This document shows, one piece after another, positions 3,205-42,783 of a stretch of 64,000 bases of DNA (positions within the stretch are counted from its first letter, which is position 1; each line of letters begins with the position of its first letter). A program made the position numbers and the translations under genes. The stretch lies in sequence record MW349129.1; one strand, written 5' to 3'. The notes beneath the pieces were generated by a model. It was not told the origin of the DNA. It was given only the letters and a program-made list of their open reading frames with translations, and made no database searches.

Positions 3205-5079
3205 ATGGGTAGATTTATTAAATCAACATATTTAAATAAAAAAGAGACACAATCAGGTAAAGAAAAAGTAGTAATGGTAGTTAAAGAAGAAGACGGTACT
3301 AAGAAACATATGGAAATAACTGATCCAATGATGCATTATTATGTAACTAAAGATGAACATTGGTTACCACCTAATAAAATTGTAGGTTCTATTGAAAAAG
3401 ATAAAGTAAGAACTGTTACTTGTAAGCATAAAGATATTATTAAATCAGTGGTTAAAGAAGCCGGTAATGCTCAAGATAAAGCAGAATATGACAGAATTAT
3501 GAAATCAGGTAATTGGCAAGAATATAGAAAATTAAGAGATTTTCATTTATTAAATAACGCTCATGGTTCTGATATTAATATAGAAGATTATAATATTAAT
3601 GAATATATTAAAAAGAATTTAGATAGTAAAGTCGGTATAGATATATGTCTATTCGATATTGAGGTTGATGGTTCTCAAGTAACAGGCTTCCCAGATCCTG
3701 AAAAAGCTGAGGCAGAGATAAATATTATAACTGTAGTGGATTGGAGTAAGAAAAAAGTATTAACATTTGCTCTTAAATATGACACTGATACTTATAAAGA
3801 AACTATGAAAGACCAAGATAAGTTAATTAAAGACTTAAATGAAATTTATAATAATGAAAATAGTGAAATTGGTAAAGATTTAGGTTTAGAATTTGAAATA
3901 TATGAATTAGATACAGAAATGCAAGTAATTAAATCTTTCTTGTATTATATTAATGAAATTAGTAAACCTGATATATGTACGGCATGGAATTGATAATAGG
4001 TTCCATTAAAAGAATATTAATTGCTGGAACGTTCTTTTTAGAATAATCAGCATCAACAAAATAAAAGTTGTTCAACGACTAAATATATTCACTCATATTA
4101 ATGAGTATGATATAGTCTATTTTATATTTAATAAATATAAAAGCTAGATTATGACTTTCCTGCAATATTTGAACGTATTAGAGTTAATGGAGAAGATCCT
4201 GCAGATTATTTCTGTTCTAAAGAATTTGAAGATAAAAAAGCATATTATAAACTAGATAAAAATGCTACTGATATGGCTAATAGATCTTCTACATTTGAGA
4301 CTAATTCTTATACTAACTGGATTGACCAATTAGCGTTATATGCAAATATTAATAAACCTAATGGAGCTTTAGAGTCAGTTAAGTTAAATGATATTGGAGA
4401 AAAAGAAGCGGGAGTCACTAAAGATGTTTATGAAGGTTCTATCTCTGATTTACATTTTAGAGACTATTATACATTCATTCTTTATAATATTAAAGATACT
4501 GTATTAACTGCATTAATCGAACATAACACTAATATGTTTGATCTATTATTCTCTATTGTAGATATGACTAGAACAAGACCTAGCAAAGCACTTAAGAAAA
4601 CTATTTGTTTAAGAAATCGTAGTTCAGTATTCTTTGAAAATCAAGGATATGTAATAAGTAATAATCATTCAAAATTATTATCAGATCCTAATGCAGATAA
4701 AATTCGTGGTGGTTTTGTAGCAGATATGATGTTAATTGAACGTAATGGAGATACATTAGTTAAAGGTAAAGATATTAGATCTAATAGATTATTTAGTAAT
4801 GTTTGCGACTTTGACTTGACTGCTCTATATCCATCTATTATTAGAGCATATAATATAACACCTGAAGGACATGTAGGTAAGATGAATATTCTTGATAAAG
4901 ATAGAATAACAGTACCTAAATATGAAGAAGATAAAGATAACTATGATTTTAATACTGAATTCGTAAGTAAGTTTAACAGTCAAGATAATGTTGCTTTTGC
5001 TCAAGAATTTCATGGTTTGCCTTCTCTTATTGAAGCATCTGACGATATTATTAAAGAATTAGAGGAGGAAATTAGTTAA
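3205..5079 (+). CDS. family B DNA polymerase, N-terminal part (3'-5' exonuclease plus motif A); spliced join(3205..3990,4144..5079), 573 aa
   Basis: ExoI FDIEVD. ExoII is restored across the intron as AWN|LDYDFP. ExoIII YNIKD and polymerase motif A DFDLTALYPSII are present. Motifs B and C are absent, so the polymerase is split. Confidence 0.88.
3991..4143 (+). ncRNA. minimal group I intron (153 nt, no ORF) in the DNA polymerase gene
   Basis: P1: exon ATGGAAT pairs with intron GTTCCAT, with U-G at the splice site. Core elements AATTGCTGGAA, AATCAGCA, GTTCAACGACTA and GATATAGTC; P7 GACTA/TAGTC; terminal G at 4143. Removal is in frame. Confidence 0.92.
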
Positions 5080-5904: not shown

Positions 5905-8367
5905 TTGAAAAGGAGTGTTTTGAATTTGGCTGATGAGAATAAAACTCAGAGAAGTATAAATAACATCAATAGAGATATGGTTAGAGGGTTAGGAGATGAA
6001 GAAAATCCTAAGAACTTATCTGACAATATACCTGATTTTGATGATAGATTAAAAAAGATAAGACGTAAAAGCAATCATGGTAATAGTAATGGTGACATTC
6101 TATCTTTAGCATCTAAAGTGAGCGGTAAGGATAGAAATGTTAGAAAATCTAATACAGGTGATGATAAAAAAGATTTCATTAAAGATTTCATAGAAGAGAA
6201 TATTGAAAATCAAGATTTTTCATCTGAGATTGCTAGGGTTTCTAGATACGATGACTATAGAATTATAGATAAATTTATACCTGAAATATCAACAAGTATT
6301 GATGTATTCGCTACTTCTATTATTGCACCTGACGATACTTCTAAATTATCATTGATGTATCGTTATGGTGATATAAATAATAAAAATGAATCAGAAAATA
6401 AAGAAGTTTTAAATGAATTAGATAGAATTGTAAAGAAATATAATTTGGACAATTTGACATATACTTCTATTCGTGACGGTTTATTATTAGGTGATGTTTT
6501 CTATATTATTAAAGATACTAAATCTGACTTTGAAGAAATACTTAATGAAAATGATGATGTATTAGGAAGAGAAACACGAGATGATCAAAAAGTGATTAAT
6601 GAATCATTTATAGATCAGAACCTTAAAGAATCTGATTTAGACACTGTAATTAATGAATTTAATAATCAATTTGAAAAACCTATTAAAGATGAAGATCAAT
6701 TAAATGAACAAAGAGCTAATTTTAAAAATGAAATATTAAAGAGTATTAATGAAAATGTAGCTTTCTTTGAAAATTCTTCTGAATTACTATCTGATATAGG
6801 TAAGTATAAAGGTTCTAATGACTTACAAGCATTTTTAGATAAAGCAGATAACAAAAATAAGTCTAGTAAATTAAAATCTGGTTCAGTATATTTTAGATCT
6901 GTAGAACCTGAAGATATGATTAAATTAGAAATTGATGGTATGTGTATTGGTTATCTTTATATTGAACCAGATTCTGGAACTGACTTAAGAGGAGGAGCTA
7001 ATCCCTTATTATCCGCTATGAATAATTTAATGGGAGACGGATACCAAAAACAAGGTCAAACAGGATCATTTTCAAGTGGTATGGGAGTTACTAATTTAGA
7101 TCCTGTCACTGGTGGTACTGCAGGAAATAATATGTCTAGCAATTCTAAAAATCCTAATTCAGGAATGAATGCTACATCTGGTTCATATTATGAAAATGGA
7201 AATACTGTTATGGCTTATCAAGGTTTAGTTGATGTTATAGTTAAAGGTATTTCTCAAAAAATTAATATGGACTTTATTAATAAAAATGATTCATTTAAAG
7301 ATATCATATATAGATTAATTCGTAAGAATTATATTATTGAAAATGGTATTAAAATGACTTTCTTAGAAGCTGATGAAGTATTTCACCATAAATTAGACAG
7401 TCAAAAAACTTATGGAGTTTCTAAACTTAATAAATCATTATTCTTTGCTAAATTATATTTAAGTACATTAATAACTACAATGATGGTTAAATTAAATCAA
7501 TCAAGAGATAGACGTGTATTTAGAGTTAATGCAGGTTTAGATGATGATTATGAGGGAACAGTAGAAGAAATAATTCGTAATGTAAGACAAAATGAAATGT
7601 CTACAGGATTATTTGGAGACGGAACTTCCGTTCAGACATTATTCAATCAAGTAGGTAACTTAGAAAATATGTACATTCCTCAAAATAAAGAGGGAACTTC
7701 TCCTTTAGAAATAGATACAATTTCTGGTATTCAGGTTGATATTAATGATGAATTCTTAGAATGGCTTAAGAAATCAGTTATATCAGGTACAGGAGTTCCT
7801 TTAAACTATATTGATGCTGAAACTGAAACTGATTACGCTCGTTCATTATCAATGCAGAATAATAACTTTGTAAGACGTGTAGTTAATTATCAGAAATCTT
7901 TTGGTGAATTCTATACTGGAGTATTAAGAAAATTATATTATCTAGAAAATGTAAGTAAGAATAAAAAAGAAAATGAAGAATTAAATAATAGAATACAAGA
8001 AATTGAAGCTTACTTCCCAGCACCTGTATTCTTAAACTTAGGAAACCTTAATGAAGAAGTTGGAGCTGTTACACAAATGATAGACTTCTTAGTTCCTTTA
8101 TATACTTCTGAAGCTTCTGGTGACGAAGAGGAAGATGATAACGAAAAATTAAAACGTCTATTCCGTAAAGAACTAGTTCAACAAGAATTCATGGCTAATT
8201 TAGATTATGATAGATACGAAGATATTATTAACAATATTAAAGATGAAATAAATAAAGATAAAAAGAAAAATGACATGGTAAATAATAATAATACTGATGA
8301 AGACGATTTATCTTCTTCAGATGACTCTGGAAATAATTCAGAAGATAATTTTGAGGATGATTTCTAA
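5905..8367 (+). CDS. portal protein (T4 gp20/phiKZ-like)
   Basis: Motifs RYDDYRIID..PEISTSIDV, RDRRVFRVNAG and ENMYIP...IDTISG resemble T4-type portal motifs; acidic C-terminal tail. The true start may be TTG 5920 or 5926, after AGGAG at 5911. Confidence 0.75.
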   Translation: MKRSVLNLADENKTQRSINNINRDMVRGLGDEENPKNLSDNIPDFDDRLKKIRRKSNHGNSNGDILSLASKVSGKDRNVRKSNTGDDKKDFIKDFIEENIENQDFSSEIARVSRYDDYRIIDKFIPEISTSIDVFATSIIAPDDTSKLSLMYRYGDINNKNESENKEVLNELDRIVKKYNLDNLTYTSIRDGLLLGDVFYIIKDTKSDFEEILNENDDVLGRETRDDQKVINESFIDQNLKESDLDTVINEFNNQFEKPIKDEDQLNEQRANFKNEILKSINENVAFFENSSELLSDIGKYKGSNDLQAFLDKADNKNKSSKLKSGSVYFRSVEPEDMIKLEIDGMCIGYLYIEPDSGTDLRGGANPLLSAMNNLMGDGYQKQGQTGSFSSGMGVTNLDPVTGGTAGNNMSSNSKNPNSGMNATSGSYYENGNTVMAYQGLVDVIVKGISQKINMDFINKNDSFKDIIYRLIRKNYIIENGIKMTFLEADEVFHHKLDSQKTYGVSKLNKSLFFAKLYLSTLITTMMVKLNQSRDRRVFRVNAGLDDDYEGTVEEIIRNVRQNEMSTGLFGDGTSVQTLFNQVGNLENMYIPQNKEGTSPLEIDTISGIQVDINDEFLEWLKKSVISGTGVPLNYIDAETETDYARSLSMQNNNFVRRVVNYQKSFGEFYTGVLRKLYYLENVSKNKKENEELNNRIQEIEAYFPAPVFLNLGNLNEEVGAVTQMIDFLVPLYTSEASGDEEEDDNEKLKRLFRKELVQQEFMANLDYDRYEDIINNIKDEINKDKKKNDMVNNNNTDEDDLSSSDDSGNNSEDNFEDDF

Positions 8368-8375
8368 TATTAACA

Positions 8376-8411
8376 TTTGAATAACGGATTAAATACAATT
8401 CGTTATTCAAA
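8376..8411 (+). terminator. hairpin after the portal gene
   Basis: TTTGAATAACG (8376-8386) pairs with CGTTATTCAAA (8401-8411). Confidence 0.6.
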
Positions 8412-8425
8412 TTTATATTATATAA
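8406..8425 (+). promoter_or_regulatory. early promoter motif (AAATTTATATTAT)
   Basis: Matches the recurring (T)TAAATATATATTAT motif; lies about 45 nt upstream of the non-virion RNAP subunit gene. Confidence 0.55.
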
Positions 8426-8467
8426 GTGTAGTACATAATATTTATTTATAAGGAGAATGAATTAGAT

Positions 8468-10381
8468 ATGACAAATGAAGAAATTGTTTTAGACTTGAAA
8501 TTAGGTAAGTACAATGATTATTTACACTCAGATAATTATTTTGAAACTTTAGAAGCTTTAAAGAAAGATATTATTAGTAATCCTCAAAAAAGAATGGAAG
8601 ACTATTTTGAAGAAAATATATCTAAAAGTAATTATTTCACTTTATTAGTACTAGGTAAACCTTTCAGAGATATGAATAAAGAGTTTACGGAAGAATATTT
8701 AGTTAATCCAACTGATATTGATGATTATTATGATTATTTTGACAAAGTTGTTGTTAATTTTATTCATGAAGGACATGATCCAATAAAAGTTAGTCAATCA
8801 ATTGCATTTGTTATTGACGAATTAACTATATTTTCAAATGAATATATTTTACCTTTAGATGGACCATCTATCTCATTATACGATATTATGAGATTGGCTA
8901 ATGAAGATAAAGAAATAGAGAAATTAATCAACTTTGATAAAGAAGACATTGACCCTAACTTAAACTATCAGCAAATCATTAATGAAGTTCAAAAACCTAA
9001 TATGCATAAATTAATTGATCGTATTAAATCTGATAAAGAAAACGATTATAAAACTTTCTTACATTCAGGAACAGGTATTAATAAGATACAATTGAATGAG
9101 GTTTTAAGTTTCGTAGGATATAAACCAGATATTCGTGGTGATGTTGTAACTGATATTATCGATACATCATTCATGCGTGGTTTAAAAGATACAACGCAAT
9201 TTGCTATTGATGCAGAATCTTCATTAAACGCATTAATGAACTCTAAGAATAAAGTACGTGAATCAGGATACTTAAACCGTAAAATTACTTTATTAACTTC
9301 AGACTTAAAATTATCAGAAACTGAAGATTGTGAAAGTAAACATTTCGTTTACGTTAATATGAACAGTCAAGATAAATTAGATAGATTTAATGATAGATTC
9401 TATTATGATGATACAGATCAAGAATTGAAATTAATTAATTCTAAAGAAGATAATCATTTAATAGGACAGATTGTTCCATTACGTTCACCTATTACATGTG
9501 CTGAATCTAAAGGAAAAATATGTCAAACTTGTTACGGTAAACGTTTATATAACATTAATAGAAACTTATCTGTAGGTATATTAGCTACTTTAAGATTAAC
9601 AGAGCCTATGACTCAAAAATTATTATCAACAAAACACTTACAAGCAGTACAATTATCTGAATTCTCTTGGCCAGATATCTTCAAAGAACACTTTGAATTC
9701 TCTGGAGATAATATTGTTCCACGTAATGAAAAGACTAAGGTTATTATTGATGAAATGGTTATTAATGAAGATTATGAATATGGAAGATATAAAGCTAATA
9801 GTTTTAAATTTAAAGTAGGTACTAAAATTCATACTGTTAAATCACCTGTAATTCTTAAAATACCAGATCAAAATATTGAGACTATGGATAAATTTTACGA
9901 TGAAGATGAAAATGCATTTATATTCAGTATGAAAGACTTAAAAGAGAATTTCTTATTTAATATTAAAATTAAAAATGAAGGCGTTGCTGATCCACTTCTT
10001 AAAATACGTTCTATATTAGAAAGTACTAAATACATTAGAAATGATTATGAAGAAAACAACTATCAAGCAATGTTCAATGATGTAACAGATTTATTACTTA
10101 AATCAGGTACAGATGTTATGAGTGTTCATTTAGAAACTATTATTAGAAACATGGTATTCTTAAATGAAGATTATAAAGAAAGAACTAAATATAGAGATCC
10201 TGAATTTGAACCTGATATTGAATTGAAGAATGTAGGTAGTGCTATTTTAAGTTCACCTTCACCAGTTCAATCATTGATCTTTGAGAAGATTAAAGCTCAG
10301 TTAAGTACTGATGACACTAATAACTTCTTCAGTAAAGATGGAGATTCAATGTTCGATCCGTTATTTGATTTTGATATTTAA
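8468..10381 (+). CDS. rpoC: multisubunit RNA polymerase beta'-C subunit, probably non-virion (AR9 gp154-like)
   Basis: SGTGIN..Q...V...G.KPD, SFMRGL, bridge-helix VRESGYLNRK, Zn ligands DCES / RSPITC..ICQTCYG, trigger-loop-like TEPMTQKLLSTKH. The sequence resembles my recollection of AR9 gp154, and the gene has an early promoter. Confidence 0.88.
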   Translation: MTNEEIVLDLKLGKYNDYLHSDNYFETLEALKKDIISNPQKRMEDYFEENISKSNYFTLLVLGKPFRDMNKEFTEEYLVNPTDIDDYYDYFDKVVVNFIHEGHDPIKVSQSIAFVIDELTIFSNEYILPLDGPSISLYDIMRLANEDKEIEKLINFDKEDIDPNLNYQQIINEVQKPNMHKLIDRIKSDKENDYKTFLHSGTGINKIQLNEVLSFVGYKPDIRGDVVTDIIDTSFMRGLKDTTQFAIDAESSLNALMNSKNKVRESGYLNRKITLLTSDLKLSETEDCESKHFVYVNMNSQDKLDRFNDRFYYDDTDQELKLINSKEDNHLIGQIVPLRSPITCAESKGKICQTCYGKRLYNINRNLSVGILATLRLTEPMTQKLLSTKHLQAVQLSEFSWPDIFKEHFEFSGDNIVPRNEKTKVIIDEMVINEDYEYGRYKANSFKFKVGTKIHTVKSPVILKIPDQNIETMDKFYDEDENAFIFSMKDLKENFLFNIKIKNEGVADPLLKIRSILESTKYIRNDYEENNYQAMFNDVTDLLLKSGTDVMSVHLETIIRNMVFLNEDYKERTKYRDPEFEPDIELKNVGSAILSSPSPVQSLIFEKIKAQLSTDDTNNFFSKDGDSMFDPLFDFDI

Positions 10382-21677: not shown

Positions 21678-24600
21678 TTAATACTTGATTTCTGTAGATA
21701 CGATTAATTTATTTTGGTATCTTCCACCTCTAGTGTAAACTTTACTATCAGTGTCACCTATATTAATACTATTTTCAGATCCATAAGCTATACATTCATC
21801 TAAGAATAAATTACCTCCTGATGAAGCTTGGAAGTCTTTTCCTTGATAACTTTCAAATGCGATACATCCTAAATTCCACGATTGTGTACCTTCATTTACA
21901 TCAGCTACATTACCTCCATCATTTCTTCCATATATACCATTTATTCTAATGATTTTTAAACCTTCATGAGTAGTTGATCCGTTATTTGATTTAACGCCAT
22001 TCAATCCTTTATCAGTTCCATTATCCATTCCTATACAATTAATTTCTATTATATTAGGTTTAGAACCATCGGCACCAATATGGTAATTTAAACCATCAAA
22101 ACTATTATAATTACCTTTACAACTATCAAGAATAATATTTTTTCCACCAACAATAGCAAGACCATTGTAACTTGAAGCAGAATGATAAAAATTACATTTC
22201 TTAAAGAATGCACTATTATTTGAAGTTAAATTCAATTCAACACAGTTTCTTCCACCATATATATTTAAATTTTCAAAATATATATTTGAAGCTAGACTTG
22301 TTAACTGTATATTTGAAGAAGATATTAAAGGTATTACATTACTATTTGAAGGTTTATTATCATTAATATTTGAATAAACTTTAGTACCATCAGTAAACCA
22401 TGAATTAGGCGTGCTTTCAACTTCATCAATACTATTTACTTTCTTTATATCAATACTATTATCTAGAGTTACAACTTTATCGGTAGCAGATCTACTAAAT
22501 TCATAAGTTCTATTTTTACCAGAAGTTAGTGTCCATGAAGGTTCATCAGCCATAACAATATTCACATTATTACCTGTACCTATTATATTAATACTCTTAT
22601 TAAATGCTTTTGTAATTAATGTACCACCGATTCTAAAATAGTTGCCATCAGCAACCATAATTGTATCATTATCATTGACTTTAGGTATTGCTACTTTAAA
22701 AGATTTAAATGGTTTTTCTTTAGATAAACCGTCATTGGAATCATTACCATTAACAGCATCTAAGTAGTAAGTAGTTCCTCCTGATAATCTATTAGTAGTT
22801 ATATCATATTTCACTCCAAAAGTACCCTTACCATCAGTAACTATTCTATCTTTTAGTATCTCATTTCCATAATTAAAATCTTTAGGTTTTCTAACTGTTA
22901 TTGGAAGAGTAGGAGCATAATTTCCATCAAGGCCAGGTAAACCTTGCAAACCTTGAGGTCCAATCTGACCTGTGTCACCTTTTAGACCTTTAATTATATT
23001 TTGTGATGTATCATTCTTCACAACTGTTATCTTATATGGTCTTTTTGTTGTTATGGGATCACTTGTATTATTCCATAATCTAAGTCTAACAGTATCTGTC
23101 GTTGTTATAAAACCATTATAAACTAATCCCACTTCTATACCAGATCCAGGAGAAACAATAACATTGTCTGAATTTGTAACACCTTGAATTGTAAAATTAA
23201 CATCTTTATAATTATTAGCAGGTACTACAACATCCACTGATTCTATTTTTTGTATTAAAGTATTGGAATTTGAAGAACTTTTAATATCTTCAAATTCAGT
23301 CCAATTGTTTGTTGTTGTATTCCATCTACGTTTATAGATACTATTACTATTATTTGGCATAAACAATTGATAGCTTAATCCCATGCTTTCTGATTTAACC
23401 GTCTGTAACTGTCCTGATGAGTTGTTTGGAAAACCTTGAGAATTCGAAGATACAATTGCAACCGTTGAAGTTGTTCTATCAGTAAACTCTGTTACAGGAG
23501 TATCAATACTTACGGTATTATATTTTAAAGTATAGTAATTCTTTTCTCCAAAGTTTGAATAAACTTTACCATCTCTATCCATCACATAATAATCTATATT
23601 TTGACTTCTTCTCGTATAGTCTCCTGTATCTATTAAATTACCTATATAATCTAATCCTTCTTCTAAATTCACTTCAATCATTTCTTGTTCTCTAGCATAA
23701 TCTATAATTTGTCTAATAATATTTAATTGATTTTCATCAAAAGATTCATATTGAGAATGAGATTTAAATATTATCCAACCTTTATTTATGATTGCTTCAT
23801 CTATTTTTTCTTTATATTGTTCAAAAGTTGTATATAGTGGTTCACCTAATGTGATACGATTAATTCTAAAAGTATCTAAAGGAGGTGTATTGATTCCTTC
23901 TTTAGTTCCAATATTAGCTCTATAATATTTTCTAGAAATTCTTCTTACAGAATCGGTATTTTCACCAAAAGGTTGGACAATAATATTGTATGTTAGACCT
24001 TCTCTTTTTAAAATATCTCTAGACAATCTTAACTCATCTTCTACTTCCTCATCCGTAAGTTGCTGAGCGTGCTTATGTTCATGAGTATGACTTACAAATT
24101 CAACGCCATATTTTTGATTCCAATCATGTATTTCATCCCATTGAAGAACTGTAGGTTCTTTATCATCAATCCACTTAGTAACTGTCGCTATTGTAAGTTT
24201 ATTTTTCTTTTCTTTCAATATAGGTTCCCATTTTGTTTTTAATTCATTTCTACCATCATCATCAATAAATGTAATTAAAGGTCTATTTTCTCCACTAGAA
24301 GTTATATTATGATTTGTAGATTTAAATTCTTTTTTTGAGAAGCTTTCTTTTAATGATTCTTTTATAACACTGTCTATTTCTTCAATATAATCATTTTTGA
24401 TATTTTCAATATCTTTATAAGTTTTATTATATTGATTATTCAATTCATTTTTAAAGTTATTTATTATATCATCAATATTTTTTATTTCTTCTTTTAAACT
24501 TGCAATCATATTTACACTGGAACTTAAACTTTCCATTTCTTCAGATAAACTCATAGTATTATTATAATCATTTTGAAATTTATCTTTTACTTTCTCAAAA

Positions 24601-25097
24601 TCATTTAAAAATGATTCAATTTGATTCAATTCTTCTTTAACTTCATTAAATGTATTTTCAATATTTTCTTTATTTTCTTGAATTTCTATCTTTTTATCTT
24701 CTAAATCATATTTAATTTTATCTAGATTGCTTAAATATTCATTTATTTCTTCTTCATTTATTGTTTTTTCTTTAAATGAATTAAGTTTTTCTTCTGTGTC
24801 TTTATTAATACTGTCAACATCTTTAGAAATTATTTTTATCTGTTTAAAAGCTTCATTAATTTGAAGATATTTTTGTTTTATAAAATCTTCAATAGAGAAG
24901 TAATCAGATATATCATATTTCCCATCTGAATTTAAATCAACATATTCATTTTTATTTACCTTTACATATTGAATATTCATTAAATCATAATAATCTAATG
25001 TATTTCTATCAACATAATAAGGTTTATTTATAGGTCCCATACCTTTACCCGGAATATAAGTTTTTTGAGGAACTATAATTAGTATACTATCTTCCAT
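21678..25097 (-). CDS. multidomain fibre/appendage protein: anchor motif, coiled coil, NodB-type polysaccharide deacetylase, fibre-knob segment, collagen repeat, beta-helix domain
   Basis: Deacetylase motifs LITFIDDDG, FVSHTHEH and QPFG; knob-like SIYKRRWN; collagen GLKGDTGQIGPQGLQGLPGLDG; pectin-lyase-like start YYLDAVNGNDSNDGLSKEKPFKS followed by beta-helix rungs. Confidence 0.75.
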   Translation of the reverse strand: MEDSILIIVPQKTYIPGKGMGPINKPYYVDRNTLDYYDLMNIQYVKVNKNEYVDLNSDGKYDISDYFSIEDFIKQKYLQINEAFKQIKIISKDVDSINKDTEEKLNSFKEKTINEEEINEYLSNLDKIKYDLEDKKIEIQENKENIENTFNEVKEELNQIESFLNDFEKVKDKFQNDYNNTMSLSEEMESLSSSVNMIASLKEEIKNIDDIINNFKNELNNQYNKTYKDIENIKNDYIEEIDSVIKESLKESFSKKEFKSTNHNITSSGENRPLITFIDDDGRNELKTKWEPILKEKKNKLTIATVTKWIDDKEPTVLQWDEIHDWNQKYGVEFVSHTHEHKHAQQLTDEEVEDELRLSRDILKREGLTYNIIVQPFGENTDSVRRISRKYYRANIGTKEGINTPPLDTFRINRITLGEPLYTTFEQYKEKIDEAIINKGWIIFKSHSQYESFDENQLNIIRQIIDYAREQEMIEVNLEEGLDYIGNLIDTGDYTRRSQNIDYYVMDRDGKVYSNFGEKNYYTLKYNTVSIDTPVTEFTDRTTSTVAIVSSNSQGFPNNSSGQLQTVKSESMGLSYQLFMPNNSNSIYKRRWNTTTNNWTEFEDIKSSSNSNTLIQKIESVDVVVPANNYKDVNFTIQGVTNSDNVIVSPGSGIEVGLVYNGFITTTDTVRLRLWNNTSDPITTKRPYKITVVKNDTSQNIIKGLKGDTGQIGPQGLQGLPGLDGNYAPTLPITVRKPKDFNYGNEILKDRIVTDGKGTFGVKYDITTNRLSGGTTYYLDAVNGNDSNDGLSKEKPFKSFKVAIPKVNDNDTIMVADGNYFRIGGTLITKAFNKSINIIGTGNNVNIVMADEPSWTLTSGKNRTYEFSRSATDKVVTLDNSIDIKKVNSIDEVESTPNSWFTDGTKVYSNINDNKPSNSNVIPLISSSNIQLTSLASNIYFENLNIYGGRNCVELNLTSNNSAFFKKCNFYHSASSYNGLAIVGGKNIILDSCKGNYNSFDGLNYHIGADGSKPNIIEINCIGMDNGTDKGLNGVKSNNGSTTHEGLKIIRINGIYGRNDGGNVADVNEGTQSWNLGCIAFESYQGKDFQASSGGNLFLDECIAYGSENSINIGDTDSKVYTRGGRYQNKLIVSTEIKY

Positions 25098-25135
25098 ACT
25101 ATATTTCCACTCCTTTAAATTTGATCTGTAAAATC

Positions 25136-25213
25136 CCCCTAATATATTTTTAAATCGATGATTATTCTATTCTTATAATTATTGGCTCATCGTTTAAAGT
25201 TATATATTAGGGG
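25136..25213. terminator. extended 78-nt hairpin between the head-protein gene and the fibre gene
   Basis: CCCCTAATATAT/ATATATTAGGGG outer stem plus TTTAAA and CGATGA/TCATCG inner stems. Confidence 0.55.
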
Positions 25214-25276
25214 AACTAATTTTAGTCGAAAAAACTAACGAAAATTAATTTTTATTATATAATAATGTTATAAATT

Positions 25277-27751
25277 TTAACCATTAATAATTTTAAAAAT
25301 ATTTTCGTTTAATAAATCTCTTTCTAATCTACTTTCTTCAGAAAGTTTTTCCATTAATTCTTCTTCTGTATATTCATCAAAAGATACAGAATTATATCCA
25401 TTAATAGAAATAGAAGATTCATTAACTTGAATTGATTTATTTACATTTAGATCATTAATGCTTTCTTCTAAGAATTTTTTAAGGCGTGTTTCATCTCTAT
25501 TAGGTACATTTTCATAGGCTTCAAACACTATATCTTCATAGTATTCTTCTAATGATTCTTCAAAACCTTCATAAAGTGAATCATCTTTATTTTTTAATTG
25601 GAAATTAATATCTTCTTCTAGCAATTCTAAATTAACTTCTTCAGATAATCTTTCTTTAACATCTTCGTTAACTTCATCTAAAGGATTAAGATAGTCTTCT
25701 AAAAGACCTGATTGAGCTTCATTATTAACACGTTGAATTGTATTCATATTAAATTCTTTTTCTAAGTTTTCTAAAGTTATTTCATTATCTGTATAGAATT
25801 CTTTAAGAACTTTATTTACTTTAGGTTCAACTACAATAACTTTCTTAAATCCTAAACCGAAATCAACTTTATCAACTAATAATGAAGAAGGATTATATAC
25901 TTTAGGAACTTCATCCATATAAGATTCTTTACTAATAACGATATCAACACGTTTACCTAAAGATTCAGATAAAGCATTTGTATATCTAATTAAGTCTTTA
26001 ATTGTGTAAGTTTCATTAACTTCTTCTTCATTAATAACTTTAGTTTTAAATTCAATATCAGTAGATCCACAATTTTCACATACTAATTCATCTTCATTAA
26101 CGTTAGGATCAACTGTTTCTTGAACTCCACATTCGTTACAAATTACTTCTCCAACTTCTTTAGAAGTTTTTAAAGCTTCTTCAAGTTCTCCATTACAATT
26201 TTCACATACTAATTCATTTGATTCATTCATTGTTAGATTGCTTCCACAATTTTCACAAACAGCTTTTCCATTTTCAATTTTACCAGTTTCACTTAAAATA
26301 CGTCTAACAGTTTCAATTGATTCATTAGTAACAAAAATTTGTTTTTCATTTTCATTCTCTAACTTAAATGTGTTTAATAGAGTTTCATGAATTTTCTCTG
26401 CATGATTTTTAAATGATTTAACTACAGCAAAATCAGAATCTTCTCTCATATATACATATGGGAAAGCTTGATTGTTTTTATCATCAACATAATTTTCATT
26501 AGCAATTATATTTTGTTTTTCAGTATTAACTTCTTTAGATTCTGGAGTACCTATAGCATATCCTACTTCAGCAGAAGTATCTAAAATTCCATTTTTTAAA
26601 TCTACAAAAGTAAATTCAGGGGCTGGATCTTTATCGTATAAATAAGTTTCAGTAACTGCTCCTCCAACACTTGGAGAACTATTTGCAGCAGATAAACCTC
26701 CATCACTAACAGAACCAACATTTGTATTTGCATTAGAAGTACTTACTGAATAAGTTGCATGTGGACCAAAAGTAGTAGGAACCATCATTTGAGAGTCTAA
26801 GAATTTAGCTCTTAATTCAGAATATCCTGGTTGTTTCTTATCTTCATCATCGTCTTCTTTTTCATCTTCGAATAAGTAATCTTCTTCAATAGAAATTTCA
26901 GGATCTGAGTTAGCTACATCAGTAACGATAACTTCATCTTTATCGGCCACAATTGGTTGATCATAATCAGGATGATCTGAATCAATTACTTGAACGTCAT
27001 CTTCATCTTCAGCATCTTCAATTTCATCAAGGTCATCAGATTCCTCATCATCAATTTCTTCTTCATCTTCATTAATTATTTCGTTAAACATTTCTTCTAA
27101 TTCTTCATCATCTTCAGGAATGTCACGTTTTAATTCTTCATTCTCATCATCATTTAAATCATCTTCAAATAACAACATATCATTTTCAATATCTTCTTCT
27201 ATGATATTTTTCTTAACTAATAATGAATGAATTTTATCACTAGCTTTTTCTTTTTTAGAATCACTTACATTTTGTTTACTTAAAGCTTTTCCTTTTTTGA
27301 ATTTACCTGGTATACCTTTAATCTTATCAAAGCTTTTTACTAATATTCCCTTAACAGATTCATTAATATTTTCAATATCTTCATTGATCTCAGCTTTAGC
27401 ATTAATAATATCTTGGATTGTATATTCAGACATTTTTAAATTAAATAATTGATTATTTATTTGTTCTAATGTAAAATTAGTGGCTGCTAAGAAGTAATCA
27501 TCAATTAAATCAAATGCTTCTTTATCACTACGAAATTTTTTAAGTGCGAAATTTATGTCTATAGCCTCTGCCTCACTATTAATGAAAAATACAGCGGCTT
27601 TTAATTTCTTTTTATCCATATAGAATAATGGACCTTGTACTAACTCATATCCTTCTTTTCTTAAATTAAAACTATAAGGTAAAACAGCATCTATTAATTT
27701 CTTATTAAATTTATCTAATAAATTTCCAGCTTCTTTACTTAATTGTTGCAT
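25277..27751 (-). CDS. acidic internal head/scaffold-like protein with Zn-ribbons
   Basis: Very acidic, with many I/L-N-E and L-x-E sites typical of prohead-protease substrates; four CxxC pairs (CENCG...CENCN, CNECG...CENCG). Confidence 0.5.
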   Translation of the reverse strand: MQQLSKEAGNLLDKFNKKLIDAVLPYSFNLRKEGYELVQGPLFYMDKKKLKAAVFFINSEAEAIDINFALKKFRSDKEAFDLIDDYFLAATNFTLEQINNQLFNLKMSEYTIQDIINAKAEINEDIENINESVKGILVKSFDKIKGIPGKFKKGKALSKQNVSDSKKEKASDKIHSLLVKKNIIEEDIENDMLLFEDDLNDDENEELKRDIPEDDEELEEMFNEIINEDEEEIDDEESDDLDEIEDAEDEDDVQVIDSDHPDYDQPIVADKDEVIVTDVANSDPEISIEEDYLFEDEKEDDDEDKKQPGYSELRAKFLDSQMMVPTTFGPHATYSVSTSNANTNVGSVSDGGLSAANSSPSVGGAVTETYLYDKDPAPEFTFVDLKNGILDTSAEVGYAIGTPESKEVNTEKQNIIANENYVDDKNNQAFPYVYMREDSDFAVVKSFKNHAEKIHETLLNTFKLENENEKQIFVTNESIETVRRILSETGKIENGKAVCENCGSNLTMNESNELVCENCNGELEEALKTSKEVGEVICNECGVQETVDPNVNEDELVCENCGSTDIEFKTKVINEEEVNETYTIKDLIRYTNALSESLGKRVDIVISKESYMDEVPKVYNPSSLLVDKVDFGLGFKKVIVVEPKVNKVLKEFYTDNEITLENLEKEFNMNTIQRVNNEAQSGLLEDYLNPLDEVNEDVKERLSEEVNLELLEEDINFQLKNKDDSLYEGFEESLEEYYEDIVFEAYENVPNRDETRLKKFLEESINDLNVNKSIQVNESSISINGYNSVSFDEYTEEELMEKLSEESRLERDLLNENIFKIING

Positions 27752-30844: not shown

Positions 30845-33800
30845 TTAAAGCATATCTTTAACTTTACGTTTTAATTCTATTAGAGCTTTATTAGTGAAAA
30901 GCATCAAGTAAATATCTGTAGTCATACGAGATACGATACTTAATGGAGAGAATATAGCTTCGATTTCTTCTTCAGGTCTATATTCAGCATAAGGAGATTC
31001 ATCAGGCGGAGTAACGTCAGCAATAACTGTTTTACATGCTCCGTAGAAACTAATCTTATCACCGATACTCATATCATCTTCATACTCTGTGAAGATTTCA
31101 ATAAGAACTCCGTCTACTTTTTCACCTTTAATTTTCTCACTATTAATTTTCTCTACAGCTGGAATATCTACATCTAATCCAGGTAATGTAGATTTATTAT
31201 CTTTAACTGCATTTTTGTATTCTTTATATTTGCTCTTAGATTTATTAATATACCCATTAACCAATTTAGCTAATGTAGGAGACATATTTTCAATATCATC
31301 ATTATAGTAGATATTTACTTTTTTAATTTCTCCAGTATATTTAGATCTAACAGCTCTATTAGAAATATCTTGTATTTCTTGTTCAAATTCAGAACCGATT
31401 TTATCTAATAAAGAACCAATACCTTCATCATCAAATGAATTCTCAAATATCATTAATGGATCTCCTGTACGTACATTTTGACCTTCTTTAACAATATATT
31501 GAATATTCGTACTAGAAGCTAAGTTGACTGTTTTCTTCATAGTAACTTTAGTTGACATAGATTCAGACATACTGCTAGAAATAATAGAACTATCTTCGTA
31601 CGTGCCATAGCTTGAAGCAACTGCAACTTTAGATAATTTACCAGCAGCAAATTGAATATCATTATTACTACCAGATCCTGCAAAGTAATTATCATTTTTA
31701 GCCAATACTTGTCCTTTATTAAATTTCTTACCTACTTCAAATTGTGGAGTAAGTTTATTATTTTGATAGAAACCACCATTAGAGTTCTTAGCAAGTTTTT
31801 CAGATATATCGATCACATCGTTATCTCCATTAATGTATTCAACAAGCATTAATCCTGTTTTCTCATTAACAGAAGTTACTTTCCCATCTTCTTTAGCTTT
31901 AAATGCAAAAGTATCTGAAATTTGATACGCTAAAGCTTTATCTACACCAGATCCAACTAATGGACGGTCATTTGTTTTAGTAGCGATTAAATGCTTAGCC
32001 TGAGTTCCTGTCATTCCTATACGAGGTGACATTTTTATTATTCTACATTAATTTAATATAGATTAGACTATATCTTTACCATATAAATGGTAACTATTAT
32101 TTAGTCGTTGAACAGTCTTTAACTGATGCTGATTAACTTAATAAAGCTTTCCAGCAATTAAATAATTTTATTGCGAACTTACCTCATTTCGTATATCCGC
32201 ATGTCTACTAGTATATGGATTTAATAATTCTAATGGAGTATATAAAGCTGTATCACTTACATCTTTTTTACTACCATCAGTATAACCACGAGTAGATTTA
32301 ATTTGTGTATCATATGAAAGTTGTCTAACTATCCCTACCTTATTAGAGTCGGGAGTGGATATTCCTAATATACCTTGCATACTTTCATCGTAAGAACGAA
32401 TATCAGGTTCATATGATTGTTCCGAGTTACGTCCAGCAGGACCTTTAAATGTAACAGAAGTCATCTTATCTATTTCTAAGTTAGGGTTTAAATCAGATAC
32501 TTCATCTACTGTAGGTTGTTCCATAATAGTTTTAATTAATTGGTCTTGTTTAACTGAAATATTCTTAGGATTTTTATTATTATAAGAATCTGAATATTCT
32601 TTATAAGCATTAGCCATCATTTTATATAATAATGCGTTGATCTGTTCTGGACCACGTACACGATAAATTCCCATATCATTATGATCTTTAGCAGATACAT
32701 CTTCCAACATCGTATTAGCTAATAGTAATAATTCAACCATATTATCAGGAAGTTTTAAATCTCTTAATACTTCTTTAGTAATAGGATCCATTGCTAAATC
32801 CATAGTATTTTTAATACCTTTACCAACATTACGACTGTAGAATTTATCATTGAAATATTCTAAGTAAGGTGTTTCAGTTTCAAAATCACTGAAGTTGTAT
32901 TGTGATGTAGGTAATACAGTTAATCCAGACATTAATAAATCAAATCTTAATTTATCAGTAGAATATATTAAATAACCATCTTGGAATTTAATCTTATTCT
33001 TTTTATCATGAATACTAATTCTTTCATTCTCAGTAGTAAATTTATAATCAACTTCATAAAGATCAAGAATATTAGTTAAACCTTTATAGAAACCTAATAA
33101 TAGAATTGTAGGTACTAATTTATTAGTAATTTTAACACGTGAAAATGCCATAGTTTTACTAGCTTGTATATTCTTACTAAATTTCTTATCAACGACTCCA
33201 AAGTCAACTTCATTGTCTAATTTATCAATAATATAGTCAAATATATTCATTTCCATTGACTTAATATTAGATTTACTACATTCATACATAACAGATTCTG
33301 TTTTATCTGCTAATATTAATTTAGATTTATTAATATTATAACCAATAGGGAAGTATTTATCTTGATCATAATCAATCTTAGATAAGCTCGCACTATCAGA
33401 AATCATTCCTAATAAACTTCTTTGGTTAAATATAAGTACATTAGTATCATCTTGGAAATTTAGTATATTTCTAGATAAACTATTATAAATAACTGATGTT
33501 ACATATTTATTATTGATTAAAGAAGCATTACCCTTTTTAACAGATAATTTAGATTTATTTTCAATATAATCTATAACTTGATCATCTTCAATAACTTTCT
33601 TAATCCATTCAGTTTCAGCATTTTCTTTATAACCGAATTTTTCTATAATGAATTTATTATAGTTAGTTGTAATCCAAACAGTGTCAGGTTTATATTTAAC
33701 GATTGGCCACATCATTAACTGTTTAGTTAATACTTTTTTACCACCATTAAGTTTCATGTATTTACCATCAATAACTTTAGGAACATCAAATTTAACATTA

Positions 33801-35263
33801 TGAGTTAAACCATCTGGACTTCTAAATTGAACTTTAACTGTATTCTTTAATGATTGACTATCTGAATTATCTTCAATATTCATTTTATTAATAAATACCG
33901 GAATATCTTCATTGTCATTAAAGCTTTTCATTATGTCAATAAAATCTTTATTAAATGTTTTTTGCATATAAGAAATATCAAAATCATTAGAAGCAATATT
34001 ATTAATAGTCTCTTCATTGATATTATTAATATTTTCATTAATTTCTCTATCAATTAATTTATCTTCAGAAAAACTAAAATCTTCTAAATCATTAAGGTAA
34101 TCATCTTGTTTTTTAGATAAAGCTAATATCTTTTTAGTATTTTTAAGAGCTTCGTCTCCAATACTAGATTTATTTTTAATATTTCTCTTAATTGATTTAA
34201 ATGAATCATTTTTATCTAATACATCTGAATATAATGTTTCAGTATCGATATCAATTAAATCTTTATTATCATTTAATTCTTTTTCAATTATCATAGCTAT
34301 ATTATATTCATCATCGACATCCATTTCAGTATTGTCTAATGATCTGATATAACTTATTGTAGAATCTATTTTATTAGATATTTTTTCTAATTGTTCATCA
34401 TTTTCATATTCAACTTCATCGTTCTGAGCTTCAATAGGGTCGATTGTTCCTACATTATCAAATGCTTTCTTTTTAATTACTCCATCTACAGCTTCAGTAT
34501 TATCATCATCTTCAACTTTACTAATTTCATCAGTATCCAATACCTGTGTATTAGTGTCAATCATTCTTCTTAATCTTTGTCTTAATCTCATATTAAGTTT
34601 ATTATAATCTTTATAATCAAATTTAAACATTATTCCATTATCTAATGAGACAAATAATAAATTAACATTTTGATTTTCACCGTGAGGTAATTCCTCTTGA
34701 TTCTTAATCATCATAAATAAGCTTGACATGAAATCTTTTGTATTAGGTCTAATAGCTTGTTGAGAAGGTTTATTATAACCATCAACATTAATTACATAAA
34801 GTAAATTATTATAATCTTCTGTATTATTTAAAGAATTAAAAGTTGATTTAATTGAATTTAATACAGTATTGAAGTTTTTAGTCATTAATGATTTATCTTC
34901 TAAATCAATAAATTTAGTTGAATCAACAATATAGTTTCTACTTTTAAATAATTTCTCATTTCTTTCAACTCTATACTGTTTGTAAGATTTAGATTTAATT
35001 TCTTTTTGATAATCTGTTATATTCGTTAATAATCTAGTTCTTCTATTTTGAGTTCTATACAATCTTGGTGTATAGATATTCTTGAAATTCTGATGATATA
35101 ATAATCCACTATTTAAGAAATCAGTAAATGAATTTTCTTTAAAACCTTTATAAATAACTAATTGGTCTTTTTTCTTATCTTTGATTTCTTCATCAATAGC
35201 TTTAATTTTATATCCAGATATTGAATAGAATTTAAGATTTTTTAATCTATTAAGATATTTCAA
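30845..35263 (-). CDS. rpoB: multisubunit RNA polymerase beta subunit, probably virion; spliced complement(join(30845..32029,32195..35263)), 1417 aa
   Basis: LNGGKKVL, SVTFKGPAG, TPDSNKVGIV and GDKISFYGACKTVI. The junction gives PYTSRHAD|SPRIGMTGTQAKH, matching bacterial beta HDDANRALMGANMQRQ. Confidence 0.88.
32030..32194 (-). ncRNA. minimal group I intron (165 nt, no ORF) in RNAP beta
   Basis: P1: exon TGCGGAT pairs with intron GTTCGCA. P10: GAGGT pairs with exon 2 ACCTC. P3 ATTATTTA/TAAATAAT, P4 TGCTG/CAGCA, P6 CAGT/ACTG, P7 GACTA/TAGTC, P8 TTACCAT/ATGGTAA and P9 are present, with a terminal G. Removal is in frame. Confidence 0.93.
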
Positions 35264-37268: not shown

Positions 37269-37340
37269 TGTCCCATAACTCAATGGTAGAGTGAGCGGTT
37301 GTTAACCGATTTGTTGAGAGTTCAAATCTCTCTGGGACAA
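37269..37340 (+). tRNA. trnN: tRNA-Asn(GTT)
   Basis: Acceptor TGTCCCA/TGGGACA, D stem ACTC/GAGT with GG, anticodon loop TT-GTT-AA, T arm GAGAG-TTCAAAT-CTCTC. One anticodon-stem mismatch, discriminator A, no encoded CCA. Confidence 0.8.
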
Positions 37341-37347
37341 CAGTTTA

Positions 37348-39840: not shown

Positions 39841-40524
39841 TTATTGAACTATTTTATTTGGTTTAACTTCACTTTTCATTTTGATTTCAGTTTTAACTTT
39901 GTCAAGAACTTCCGATTCATATAAAGAAGGATCTTCTTCATATTTTTTAGTCATTTTCTTAACAGCGGCTAATTTATTTTCCAATGGTGCTTCTAATTCT
40001 ACTTGATTAAATAATCCTTCAAAATTACCGAAAACAAATTCTTCATTTAATGGAATAAACAGATCTCCATTATGTGCTAACTCATGGGCAGTATAAGATA
40101 AAGGCACAATTCCTATATTACCTTCAAAATGCATTTTAATAACATCTTCAGCTATTTTAAAACTTTCATATGATTTTTTATACTCATAATTAGTTTTAAG
40201 TTTTTCTCTATAGCTAGATACTATATCATATAAAGACAATGGGTAGTGGTGCATTTCCATAGTTAAACGCTTATCATCATTTATATCAACTTCTGGTATA
40301 AATTTACATTTAGTGAGGTCCATTTCAGTTTTCAAAGCTTTAATAAATGATTTGTATTCATATGAGCTTCTAACTATTTTTTCAATATATTTATTAAATG
40401 TCTCTTCAGACTTTATATCATCTTCATTATTATACATTTCAAATTTCTTTGTTTCATCTACATTTAATTCTACTGTTTCGATTAATTTTGGAAGGTCTTT
40501 TTTATCTACTTTTGGCATTTGCAT
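39841..40524 (-). CDS. protein with HNH-like (His-Me finger) motif
   Basis: C........MEMHH...GIVPLSYTAHELAH; late promoter. Confidence 0.45.
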   Translation of the reverse strand: MQMPKVDKKDLPKLIETVELNVDETKKFEMYNNEDDIKSEETFNKYIEKIVRSSYEYKSFIKALKTEMDLTKCKFIPEVDINDDKRLTMEMHHYPLSLYDIVSSYREKLKTNYEYKKSYESFKIAEDVIKMHFEGNIGIVPLSYTAHELAHNGDLFIPLNEEFVFGNFEGLFNQVELEAPLENKLAAVKKMTKKYEEDPSLYESEVLDKVKTEIKMKSEVKPNKIVQ

Positions 40525-40568
40525 AGATTTAATACCTTCTTTCTAATTTTCTTTTATCTATATTAGTA

Positions 40569-40580
40569 TAATTAAATGTT
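40569..40580 (-). promoter_or_regulatory. late promoter AACA-N6-TA
   Basis: AACA-TTTAAT-TA, 45 nt upstream of the 40524 start. Confidence 0.6.
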
Positions 40581-40618
40581 ATGAATATTTTTTAGTCTTT
40601 ATGCGTTTCATTTAAATT

Positions 40619-40636
40619 TTTAAATATATATTATAA
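40619..40636 (+). promoter_or_regulatory. early promoter motif
   Basis: TTTAAATATATATTATAA. Confidence 0.7.
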
Positions 40637-40698
40637 AAGTGAAGTACTAATTAGCTAATAGTATTTCATAAAAATTACACTAGGAGAGTGAATAGGAT

Positions 40699-42783
40699 AT
40701 GAGTAGAATAATACTAAAGAAAAACAACTTATCAGAAGAAAATATCAGTTTAAAGGAGGTTAAACGTTGGTTTAAGAAAGCAATAGATGTTAATCAACCA
40801 TCTAAAATGGTAAATGATAAAAATTATGTAAATAATGTAAATAATCTTTTTGATGGCGTTATTAATATTATGAAAGAAAATAAAATAACAGATACAATGT
40901 TTAGATTTATTTCAAATGATAGTAATGAAGATGCTAGAAATATTTTTATTATTTATTCAATTGATAGTATTCCTTTTGTTACTAGAGTATATGGACCAAA
41001 AATGAATCTTAAAGATAAAAATAGTGATATAAATGTAGATGCATTATTAAAATTTATTAAATCAAGTATCATTGACAATTTAATGATTTACAAATTTTAT
41101 AAAACTACAGATTTTAGTTTCCATAAAAAACTAAGTAGTTTCGGTAATTATGAAAGAAATACATTATATGATTTAATTGCTGAAATTAATAAAGATGCTA
41201 TTATTGCAGCATATAAAGAACTAAGTGTGGATAACTTAGGTAGTTACTTAATTTCATTAGACAATGAGGAACTACTAAATAAATCTTATGATGCAATTAA
41301 TTATTTTGATTTACTAATGGATGCTAATATAAATGTTAGAAGTAAAGAAGGTAAATTGATTCAAAAGATTGACAGAAATGATATATTTTCAAATAGAACA
41401 TATTCTGAAGTGTTTACATTTAGTCAACGTTCAGATTATTATTTCGCTAGTAATCCATTATTCAATATTCCAAAAGTAAGTGATGTAAGGGATGATACTA
41501 GAGTAGATTTATTTATATGTACAAATGGAAAAGAACAAAAAATAAGAGATACAAGTGTCTTAACTAGAGAAAATTTATATTTCAATCCATTTAGACAACG
41601 ATTCTTGTCAGTTAGCTATGAACATCCTATTAGAGAGACATTGATATATGATTTATTCTTAAGTTTCTTCGGTATAGAAAATATTGAAAATACTTTAAAG
41701 AGATTTACATTTGAACTTCTTCAAGGTGTTTATTCAGGAATATATTCTAAAGGGAATGTTAATGAAGTTACTTCAAAATCATATTTATTAAATTCAGAAA
41801 ATAAACGTGGATATACTAAGAAGAAGAAAAATGAGTATCCATTAAAAATGAATATATTAGAAGCATCAAGCACTAGTACTCATATAGTAGGATATACTTT
41901 ATTCAATAACTTCTTATTTGAATATATACAGTCAAGTAATAAAACTATAAAACTTGATGATTTTAATGTTATAAAATTAATGAAATTCATTACTTTTGAA
42001 AATAATAACACTGATTTTAATGAAGATATTAAAAATGTCTTTACGTCAAGAAAAGATATATTTAATGGTAATAAACGTATTAATACATCTTCGCATAGAT
42101 ATACAAATCTAAAACTAGGTTTAGAATCTTCATTAAATACAATATTTAATGAGGATAAAAATTATATTGATGCATTTACTAATCAATATCAAAATATAAT
42201 TGAAGGAAAACATGCATTTTCTAAACCTGAAAAAGAAAGTATTATTGAAATCAATAATGAAGATGAATTAAAAGAAATGCAGGAAGAAATCAAATCAAAA
42301 GATTCTAATATAGAATATGTAGAAGAAACTAAAGAAGAAACTAAAAATGATAAAAAAGAGGAGAAATTAAATATGTCATATCAAATTATTAAAGAAAATA
42401 AGTTTACTAAGGATGTATCATTTAAATATGCAGGTTCTACACATAGAATTGATAAAATTCGTAAAGGGGATATTGAATTAGAAATTGCTAAACGTAAATT
42501 ATTCATTAATAAATTAATTAATGATAATACTAAATTTTCTTTCGTAGATAGCGTAGAGTTCTCGGATAGTCATACTATTAAAGTTACTAATATTGATGGT
42601 GAAGTTCAATTTGTTAGTGATTATGTTGATGTTCTTGAAGGAACAGATACTTTAGAAGACATTAGAATTAAAGTTACTAATAAAGATTTAGATAGTGATG
42701 AAAATTTAGTTAAATTAATTACTGGTGAAGAAACTGATATTAATTCTTTAGATGAAGAAATCTTAGATTCATTTATGGTTTAA
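40699..42783 (+). CDS. large early hypothetical protein
   Basis: 694 aa, AGGAG SD and early promoter; no motif recognised. Confidence 0.75.
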   Translation: MSRIILKKNNLSEENISLKEVKRWFKKAIDVNQPSKMVNDKNYVNNVNNLFDGVINIMKENKITDTMFRFISNDSNEDARNIFIIYSIDSIPFVTRVYGPKMNLKDKNSDINVDALLKFIKSSIIDNLMIYKFYKTTDFSFHKKLSSFGNYERNTLYDLIAEINKDAIIAAYKELSVDNLGSYLISLDNEELLNKSYDAINYFDLLMDANINVRSKEGKLIQKIDRNDIFSNRTYSEVFTFSQRSDYYFASNPLFNIPKVSDVRDDTRVDLFICTNGKEQKIRDTSVLTRENLYFNPFRQRFLSVSYEHPIRETLIYDLFLSFFGIENIENTLKRFTFELLQGVYSGIYSKGNVNEVTSKSYLLNSENKRGYTKKKKNEYPLKMNILEASSTSTHIVGYTLFNNFLFEYIQSSNKTIKLDDFNVIKLMKFITFENNNTDFNEDIKNVFTSRKDIFNGNKRINTSSHRYTNLKLGLESSLNTIFNEDKNYIDAFTNQYQNIIEGKHAFSKPEKESIIEINNEDELKEMQEEIKSKDSNIEYVEETKEETKNDKKEEKLNMSYQIIKENKFTKDVSFKYAGSTHRIDKIRKGDIELEIAKRKLFINKLINDNTKFSFVDSVEFSDSHTIKVTNIDGEVQFVSDYVDVLEGTDTLEDIRIKVTNKDLDSDENLVKLITGEETDINSLDEEILDSFMV

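Follow-up and report, generated by a model that had tools for sequence, protein, structure and literature searches.

A predicted 165-nt group I intron in a virion RNA polymerase gene of Staphylococcus phage Madawaska and the minimal family to which it belongs

How is a continuous β-like subunit of the virion RNA polymerase (RNAP) made from a gene whose reading frame is interrupted? This question is raised by CPT_Madawaska_160 of Staphylococcus phage Madawaska, a 265-kb AR9-like jumbo phage of S. aureus. We analysed a 64-kb stretch of its genome (the window; bases 124001-188000 of MW349129, record coordinate = window coordinate + 124000). The gene occupies positions 30845..35263 of the minus strand and contains an insert of 165 nucleotides (nt) at 32030..32194. 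We put the probability at about 0.9 that this insert is a group I intron whose ordinary splicing restores the essential subunit.

The existence of an intron at this place is not new. The 2.5-kb stretch around it is 100% identical to MW349129.1, where GenBank names the product 'viral RNA polymerase beta subunit, C-terminal' and already joins two exons with the remark 'exon junction predicted based on alignment to YP_009283093'; CPT_Madawaska_137, the gene for the DNA polymerase exonuclease subunit, is likewise joined from two exons. Group I introns are known from AR9, and intron-disrupted genes for RNAP subunits, DNA polymerase, gyrase B, terminase and prohead protease have been reported in these phages, by protein alignment only (Korn et al., bioRxiv 10.1101/2020.12.14.422802). 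What we add at this junction, predicted earlier by protein alignment alone, is computed support at the RNA level, from structure and covariation.

Boundaries of the insert and the coding sequence it interrupts

The extent of the insert was fixed by an uninterrupted allele. The coding sequence of phage S6 is 4254 nt long, that is 4419 - 165, and its alignment with the Madawaska gene put the insert at exactly 32194..32030, in agreement with an initial annotation made from the sequence alone. Among the equally scoring placements of the insert, this one alone has both a U before the 5' splice site and a terminal G: the last base of exon 1 is U (GAU) and that of the insert is G (...AAAAAUG). Exon 1 (32195..35263, minus strand) has 1023 codons and ends CAT GCG GAT; exon 2 (30845..32029, minus strand) has 394 codons plus stop and starts TCA CCT CGT ATA GGA ATG. 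Both are defined by the list of open reading frames (ORFs), GenBank and the S6 alignment. The start of exon 2 is identical in DC4. The gene is continuous across the 32195/32029 site in S6, DC4, SA1, MarsHill and PALS_2, and the joined Madawaska frame, ...RHAD|SPRIGM..., gives a peptide that the insert-free genes of S6, DC4 and SA1 share. Automatic inference of splice sites from open frames and the P1 pairing was dropped as too ambiguous in AU-rich DNA, and junctions were therefore set by the intron-less S6 alleles, for 7 of the 12 related copies described below.

The identity of the gene rests on several sources. Exon 2 carries the Rpb2 domain 6 signature (Pfam PF00562, E 1.5e-8) and matches bacterial and plastid β chains in PDB. 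Pfam gave no match for exon 1 or for the pieces of the DNA polymerase exonuclease gene, and where it was silent we relied on the GenBank annotation and on PDB matches. The uninterrupted S6 protein aligns with bacterial β chains across the junction ('...lnpytsrhadsprigmtgtqakhliatktndrplvgsg'). The HAD|SPRIGM junction sits inside the equivalent of the bacterial β motif HDDANRxLMGxNMQRQ, and the correspondence with HDDANRALM that the initial annotation had proposed is borne out by this alignment, as HDDANR(A/V)LM.

Read without splicing, the locus holds two ORFs, of 1031 and 395 amino acids. The first extends 8 codons into the insert, and the second begins at an AUG that forms the final three bases of the insert, in frame with exon 2. 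The insert could on this basis be an unspliced intergenic spacer, the β-like subunit being assembled from the two polypeptides as in other split jumbo-phage RNAP subunits. The position of the upstream stop, 27 nt into the insert, and the in-frame AUG at its end both fit such an arrangement, and β and β' are naturally divided among several genes in this phage family (Korn et al.). However, the break would bisect the most conserved β motif, close relatives make one continuous protein, and a spacer would not be expected to hold a full group I core with covariation and with P1 and P10 fitted to precisely these exons. Directly 5' of the AUG there is no visible purine-rich ribosome-binding motif, and GenBank annotates none there. 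The terminal AUG is itself a feature of the intron family, found also at sites where it is out of frame, such as site A of phage LY01. We regard the two-polypeptide arrangement as very improbable.

Group I core, exon guides and covariation

The insert, 26% G+C and without an ORF, was recognised as a group I intron by Rfam and by our own family model. In a scan of 1.2 kb around it, RF00028 (group I intron) scored 55.9 bits against a curated threshold of 50 (E 3.2e-13), with the full model (1-253) aligned at 32043..32224. Structure mapping, covariation, the Rfam alignment and energy-based folding together placed P3 at intron nt 28-34 / 97-103 (32092..32167, minus strand). P3 encloses P4 (P and Q blocks, nt 39-44 / 63-68), two hairpins, P5 (nt 47-60) and P6 (nt 70-82), and the R block together with the 5' strand of P7 (GACUA, nt 89-93). 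It is followed on the same strand by the P8 hairpin (nt 104-117; 32078..32091), by the 3' strand of P7, UAGUC, in the S block GAUAUAGUC (nt 125-129; 32066..32070), which pairs with GACUA as the pseudoknot helix, and by the P9 hairpin (nt 134-152; 32043..32061) with a 13-nt tail to the terminal G (nt 165, position 32030); P8 and P9 emerged from structure mapping, covariation and folding. Energy-based folding alone returned P4, P5, P6, P7, P8 and P9, with z = -3.07. Both strands of P7 are invariant in 21 of 21 family members, and from established group I knowledge P7 probably holds the guanosine-binding G-C pair. No P2, P7.1/7.2 or P5abc was visible in the mapped structure.

Guide segments match both exons, as had been noticed initially. 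In P1, the last seven bases of exon 1, UGCGGAU (32195..32201, minus strand), form 7 bp with the internal guide sequence GUUCGCA (intron nt 17-23; 32172..32178, minus strand), the last U giving a U-G wobble at the 5' splice site. In P10, a second guide, AUGAGGU (intron nt 8-14; 32181..32187, minus strand), forms 7 bp with nt 3-9 of exon 2. The introns of phages PB50 and AH12 at the same site are also 165 nt long, with ≈ 76% core identity to that of Madawaska, and their exons have changed together with their guides. P1 shows a compensatory change (exon G to C): GCGGAU with GUUCGC in Madawaska, GCCGAU with GUCGGC in PB50 and AH12. P10 differs at two exon positions, and the guide bases that pair with them have changed to match (ACCUC with GAGGU vs UCCA with UGGA). 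The features that mark a group I intron were thus found together: the RF00028 score, a P3-P9 core with the P3/P7 pseudoknot, the P1 wobble, a terminal G with P10, and a restored coding sequence.

Covariation, a check that the initial annotation had suggested, was analysed by structural alignment. A covariance model was built from 11 related introns, with which Madawaska and the β genes of LY01, PB50 and AH12 supplied 21 members. A MAFFT alignment failed to keep the stems in register and was set aside in favour of realignment to the model. Standard pairs occupied 94.3% of the cells, compared with 69.8% after shuffling and 27-48% when the partners were slid. Changes on both sides were seen in 24 of 34 pairs, and the covariation score was 0.587 against 0.156. 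Covariation is seen in P3, P5, P6, P8 and P9; P4 and P7 hardly vary.

From the established chemistry of group I introns we infer five steps, including a catalysis that may be independent of proteins. The RNA would take the standard P3-P9 core with its P3/P7 pseudoknot, with neither P2 nor a peripheral domain. The guide GUUCGCA would pair with the end of exon 1 and so present the U-G wobble at the 5' splice site, which free guanosine bound in P7 would attack. AUGAGGU, just upstream of the P1 guide, would hold exon 2 in P10. The freed exon 1 would then attack after the terminal G, joining the exons. The expected product is a continuous subunit of 1417 amino acids, ...RHAD-SPRIGMTGTQ..., intact within its equivalent of HDDANRALMGxNMQRQ; unspliced, translation would end within the intron.

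Several points weigh against this reading. Splicing of the CPT_Madawaska_160 transcript is a prediction from the DNA. Rfam scans of the whole window, in gathering and in E-value mode, returned a tRNA only and missed both introns that it contains, the 165-nt one because of the speed filters. A 7-bp P1 is by itself only moderately unusual, since 30 of 1387 mock sites within this gene also reach that length. The alignment used for covariation was fitted to the structure of the model and is biased toward it, even if the margin is large. Finally, with its AU-richness, and with neither P2 nor a GNRA tetraloop or other recognisable tertiary clamp, it is uncertain how efficiently the RNA would fold unaided.

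This last point leads to a different possibility, namely that the group I intron is too stripped to self-splice under physiological conditions and would need a phage or host RNA chaperone, a maturase or low temperature. Besides the low G+C content and the missing P2 and GNRA loops, the hairpins are only 4-7 bp long, the predicted structure has an ensemble frequency of 0.0017, and in some paralogues even P8 is lost. These phages plaque and grow poorly at 37 °C (Korn et al.), although an explanation by temperature must also account for S6. The junctions of the catalytic core and the P7 site, on the other hand, are intact and nearly invariant in 21 copies. Moreover, the AR9 introns are said to self-splice in vitro, reportedly a result of Lavysh and co-workers from 2016. 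We judge a need for help unlikely, but it carries appreciable weight. As a side possibility, marginal folding of a dozen introns in essential genes might contribute to the failure to grow at 37 °C.

A minimal family in essential genes and its gain and loss

The intron is not alone in the window. The four conserved sequence blocks quoted in the initial annotation are present exactly, on the minus strand of the β gene and again at 4017-4119 (plus strand); the 16-mer and the 13-mer among them occur exactly at these two places only in the 64 kb. The second place is a sister intron of 153 nt in CPT_Madawaska_137 (3991..4143, plus strand), whose P1 pairs AUGGAAU with GUUCCAU. MarsHill, DC4 and S6 are exactly 153 nt shorter at this site of the DNA polymerase exonuclease gene. 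The proposal that the two introns share a core, while P5, P6, P8 and P9 differ in sequence and remain paired, held in the structure-based alignment of 21 members. With its filters off, the family model found these two copies alone in the window, at 144 bits (β gene) and 117 bits, the next match scoring 15.6 bits (E 2.3). The 1.2-kb Rfam scan around the sister intron gave nothing at E ≤ 1. The tRNA recovered by Rfam lies at 37269-37341 (plus strand; 62 bits); its anticodon is GUU according to the alignment, and GenBank flags it as a pseudogene tRNA-Asn.

Applied to the whole genome, the family model found 12 copies (94-144 bits) in nine essential genes of replication, transcription and packaging or head assembly, all of them in genes that GenBank annotates as joined or split. 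One lineage retargeted to a second gene, as first suggested, was therefore correct and an understatement, the more so as LY01 has about 33 copies. A scan for a pair of blocks had also been proposed: a loose search for R and S pairs gave nothing but chance pairs beyond the two window introns, and the family model confirmed that the window has no further copies. Two copies each lie in the genes for the virion RNAP β N-terminal part, the non-virion RNAP β C-terminal part, the prohead scaffold/protease and the large terminase. Single copies lie in those for the virion RNAP β C-terminal part, the DNA polymerase catalytic subunit, the DNA polymerase exonuclease subunit and gyrase B. In each of the 12, the guide sequence fits the exons on either side. 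It is reasonable to suppose that both replication and virion transcription would depend on splicing.

The 7 copies with intron-less S6 alleles measure 153, 155, 165, 174, 178, 184 and 186 nt, and core identity between paralogues is 60-84%. Some members have a P2 hairpin and others, including both window copies, have none; in some, P8 is virtually lost.

Among the members, only a copy in the large terminase gene, terL, bears a gene for a homing endonuclease. The terL gene, which had resisted reconstruction by Korn et al., was resolved (6296-9741 within MW349129 50001-100000) against the intact terL of S6. Exon 1 is followed by an intron of ≈ 1.25 kb, in which homing endonuclease gene 070 lies ahead of the family core (8024-8190), then by a micro-exon of ≈ 13 nt (8191-8203), a second mini-intron of ≈ 160 nt and the last exon from ≈ 8365.

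The number of copies differs widely between related phages. Full-length blastn matches numbered 12 in Madawaska, 33 in LY01, 10 in MarsHill, ≈ 30 in AH12, ≈ 20 in PB50 and ≈ 30 in Machias, and S6, DC4, PALS_2 and SA1 were absent among the matches listed. The family model had no match in 89 kb of S6 covering 9 of the 12 orthologous sites, and S6 is near-identical to Madawaska. At the β-gene site, the intron is present in Madawaska, LY01, PB50 and AH12 and absent from S6, DC4, SA1, MarsHill and PALS_2. Such polymorphism in presence is one mark of a mobile (homing) group I intron; an intron-encoded homing endonuclease was not found in the 165 nt, and the nearest annotated endonuclease gene in the window is ≈ 14 kb away. 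The phages that span this range, from none at the nine S6 sites to about 33 copies, are ≈ 95% identical in the two genes compared. They offer a clean natural experiment on the spread of introns that are ORF-less and mostly free of endonucleases.

At two mini-intron sites, those of the prohead protease (site a) and the virion RNAP β N-terminal part, the S6 counterparts have larger inserts of ≈ 1.16 kb and ≈ 1.95 kb (6277-8290 and 21935-25447 of separate S6 stretches); these contain ORFs and have no match to the family model.

The exact core of the family was absent from 185,579 species-representative genomes and from IMG/VR, and it was found in four short contigs of one metagenome, Ga0079226, which are related to these Staphylococcus jumbo phages and are more densely interrupted, with up to three family introns per ≈ 650 nt and exons down to ≈ 11 nt. 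Contigs of uncultivated jumbo phages also hold compact group I introns, of ≈ 170-220 nt, that are more distantly related.

Within the β gene, the region of the conserved motif is a hot spot for insertions. A second family intron lies 24 nt downstream (site C) in LY01 and AH12, and the single β gene of LY01 contains four. MarsHill and PALS_2 have, 17 nt downstream, an unrelated 1.3-kb intron with an ORF for a 310-amino-acid CapR/treble-clef zinc-finger protein (1624-2925 of the MarsHill stretch), a kind of protein recently described as a homing endonuclease (Nucleic Acids Research 2025). Three intron sites thus fall within 24 nt at the equivalent of HDDANRALMGxNMQRQ. We considered whether the mini-intron arose by deletion from the MarsHill/PALS_2 intron and found no support: the two are inserted 17 nt apart, and the MarsHill/PALS_2 intron scores only 26-40 bits against either model.

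Spread of the family and comparison with known systems

Two schemes may explain how the family has spread. One is reverse splicing of intron RNA at sites of short guide complementarity, followed by reverse transcription and recombination; the alternative is DNA-level homing by endonucleases. The presence of 12 to ≈ 33 ORF-less paralogues at unrelated coding sites would fit reverse splicing. So would the finding that sites A, C and D have only GGU|A in common around the junction, together with the same GCC guide. Madawaska has a reverse transcriptase gene, CPT_Madawaska_208, and according to a review the pathway requires reverse transcription and direct evidence for it is still lacking. S6, however, has the same reverse transcriptase and yet no family member at the nine orthologous sites. 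The retron-like genes (40290-41795 in Madawaska and 1-1059 in S6, of the respective fetched stretches) are 94% identical, and the idea that the presence of the gene tracks that of the family was abandoned for lack of correlation.

Target choice can be read in more than one way. The gyrB mini-intron (1317-1486 of the Madawaska gyrB stretch) and the β-site intron of PB50 and AH12 share the 8 nt upstream of the splice site, AUGCCGAU|, and their downstream exons are unrelated; the two introns are not nearest relatives. This could reflect target choice directed by the guide, as reverse splicing would have it, or coincidence. Guides differ among paralogues, so that retargeting requires mutation in either scheme, and same-site spread is explained by recombination between co-infecting phages. 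The terL member carries its own homing endonuclease gene, and several free-standing endonucleases could act in trans. On balance, spread by reverse splicing appears doubtful to us.

A bolder proposal would combine both themes: that these AU-rich introns of 153-186 nt are among the smallest natural self-splicing group I ribozymes and also form an ORF-less family that is actively transposing via reverse splicing, with the phage reverse transcriptase making the cDNA. We hold this to be slightly more doubtful still. If true, it would provide a tractable phage model for a route of mobility that was put forward decades ago and still lacks direct evidence.

A minimal, AU-rich, multi-copy family with rapid gain and loss appears to be undescribed. 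Our literature search found no description of a single minimal multi-copy family, of sizes below the ≈ 200 nt of the Azoarcus intron (the usual benchmark), of absence from near-identical phages, or of invisibility to routine Rfam scans. A search for accounts of mini group I introns, or of which group I intron is the smallest, gave nothing relevant. Natural group I cores as small as these (≈ 150-190 nt), without P2 or P8, should be useful for the question of the minimal functional fold. For annotation, routine use of Rfam under-calls such introns. Both went unseen by Rfam when the 64 kb were scanned, and one did so even when 1.2 kb were scanned, which makes it likely that split genes of AU-rich jumbo phages are under-explained. 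The basic picture of AR9-like phages with polymerase genes riddled by introns is unchanged by these results.

The closest relatives by lineage are the introns of the Bacillus jumbo phages AR9 and PBS1, which belong to the same phage lineage and interrupt host genes of the same types (for split RNAP subunits, DNA polymerase and gyrase); those in the RNAP genes of AR9 are related introns (Korn et al.; Nucleic Acids Research 2025). By blastn, however, AR9, PBS1 and BpSp have only ≈ 30 nt around the S block in common with the mini-intron family. The T4 td and SPO1 DNA polymerase introns, which bear homing endonuclease genes, and cases of 'collaborative homing', in which ORF-less introns act with free-standing endonucleases, resemble the Madawaska intron in that the target is the most conserved motif of an essential gene and presence is polymorphic; they differ in that the 165-nt intron has neither an ORF nor an adjacent endonuclease gene. 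Staphylococcus phage Twort likewise has several closely related ORF-less group I introns, several of them in one gene. The introns of its orf142, reportedly described by Landthaler and Shub in 1999, are said to be ≈ 250 nt long, of subgroup IA2 and equipped with extra peripheral helices. In contrast, the Madawaska family has members of 153-186 nt in 12-33 copies per genome, with no full-length blastn similarity to Twort-like phages. In architecture, the nearest parallel is the Azoarcus tRNA-Ile intron, commonly cited as the smallest group I intron that self-splices, which shares the minimal P1-P10 layout without large peripheral domains. Whereas that intron is G+C-rich and has P2 and two tetraloop-receptor contacts, the Madawaska intron, at 26% G+C and with neither P2 nor GNRA loops, is ≈ 40 nt shorter.

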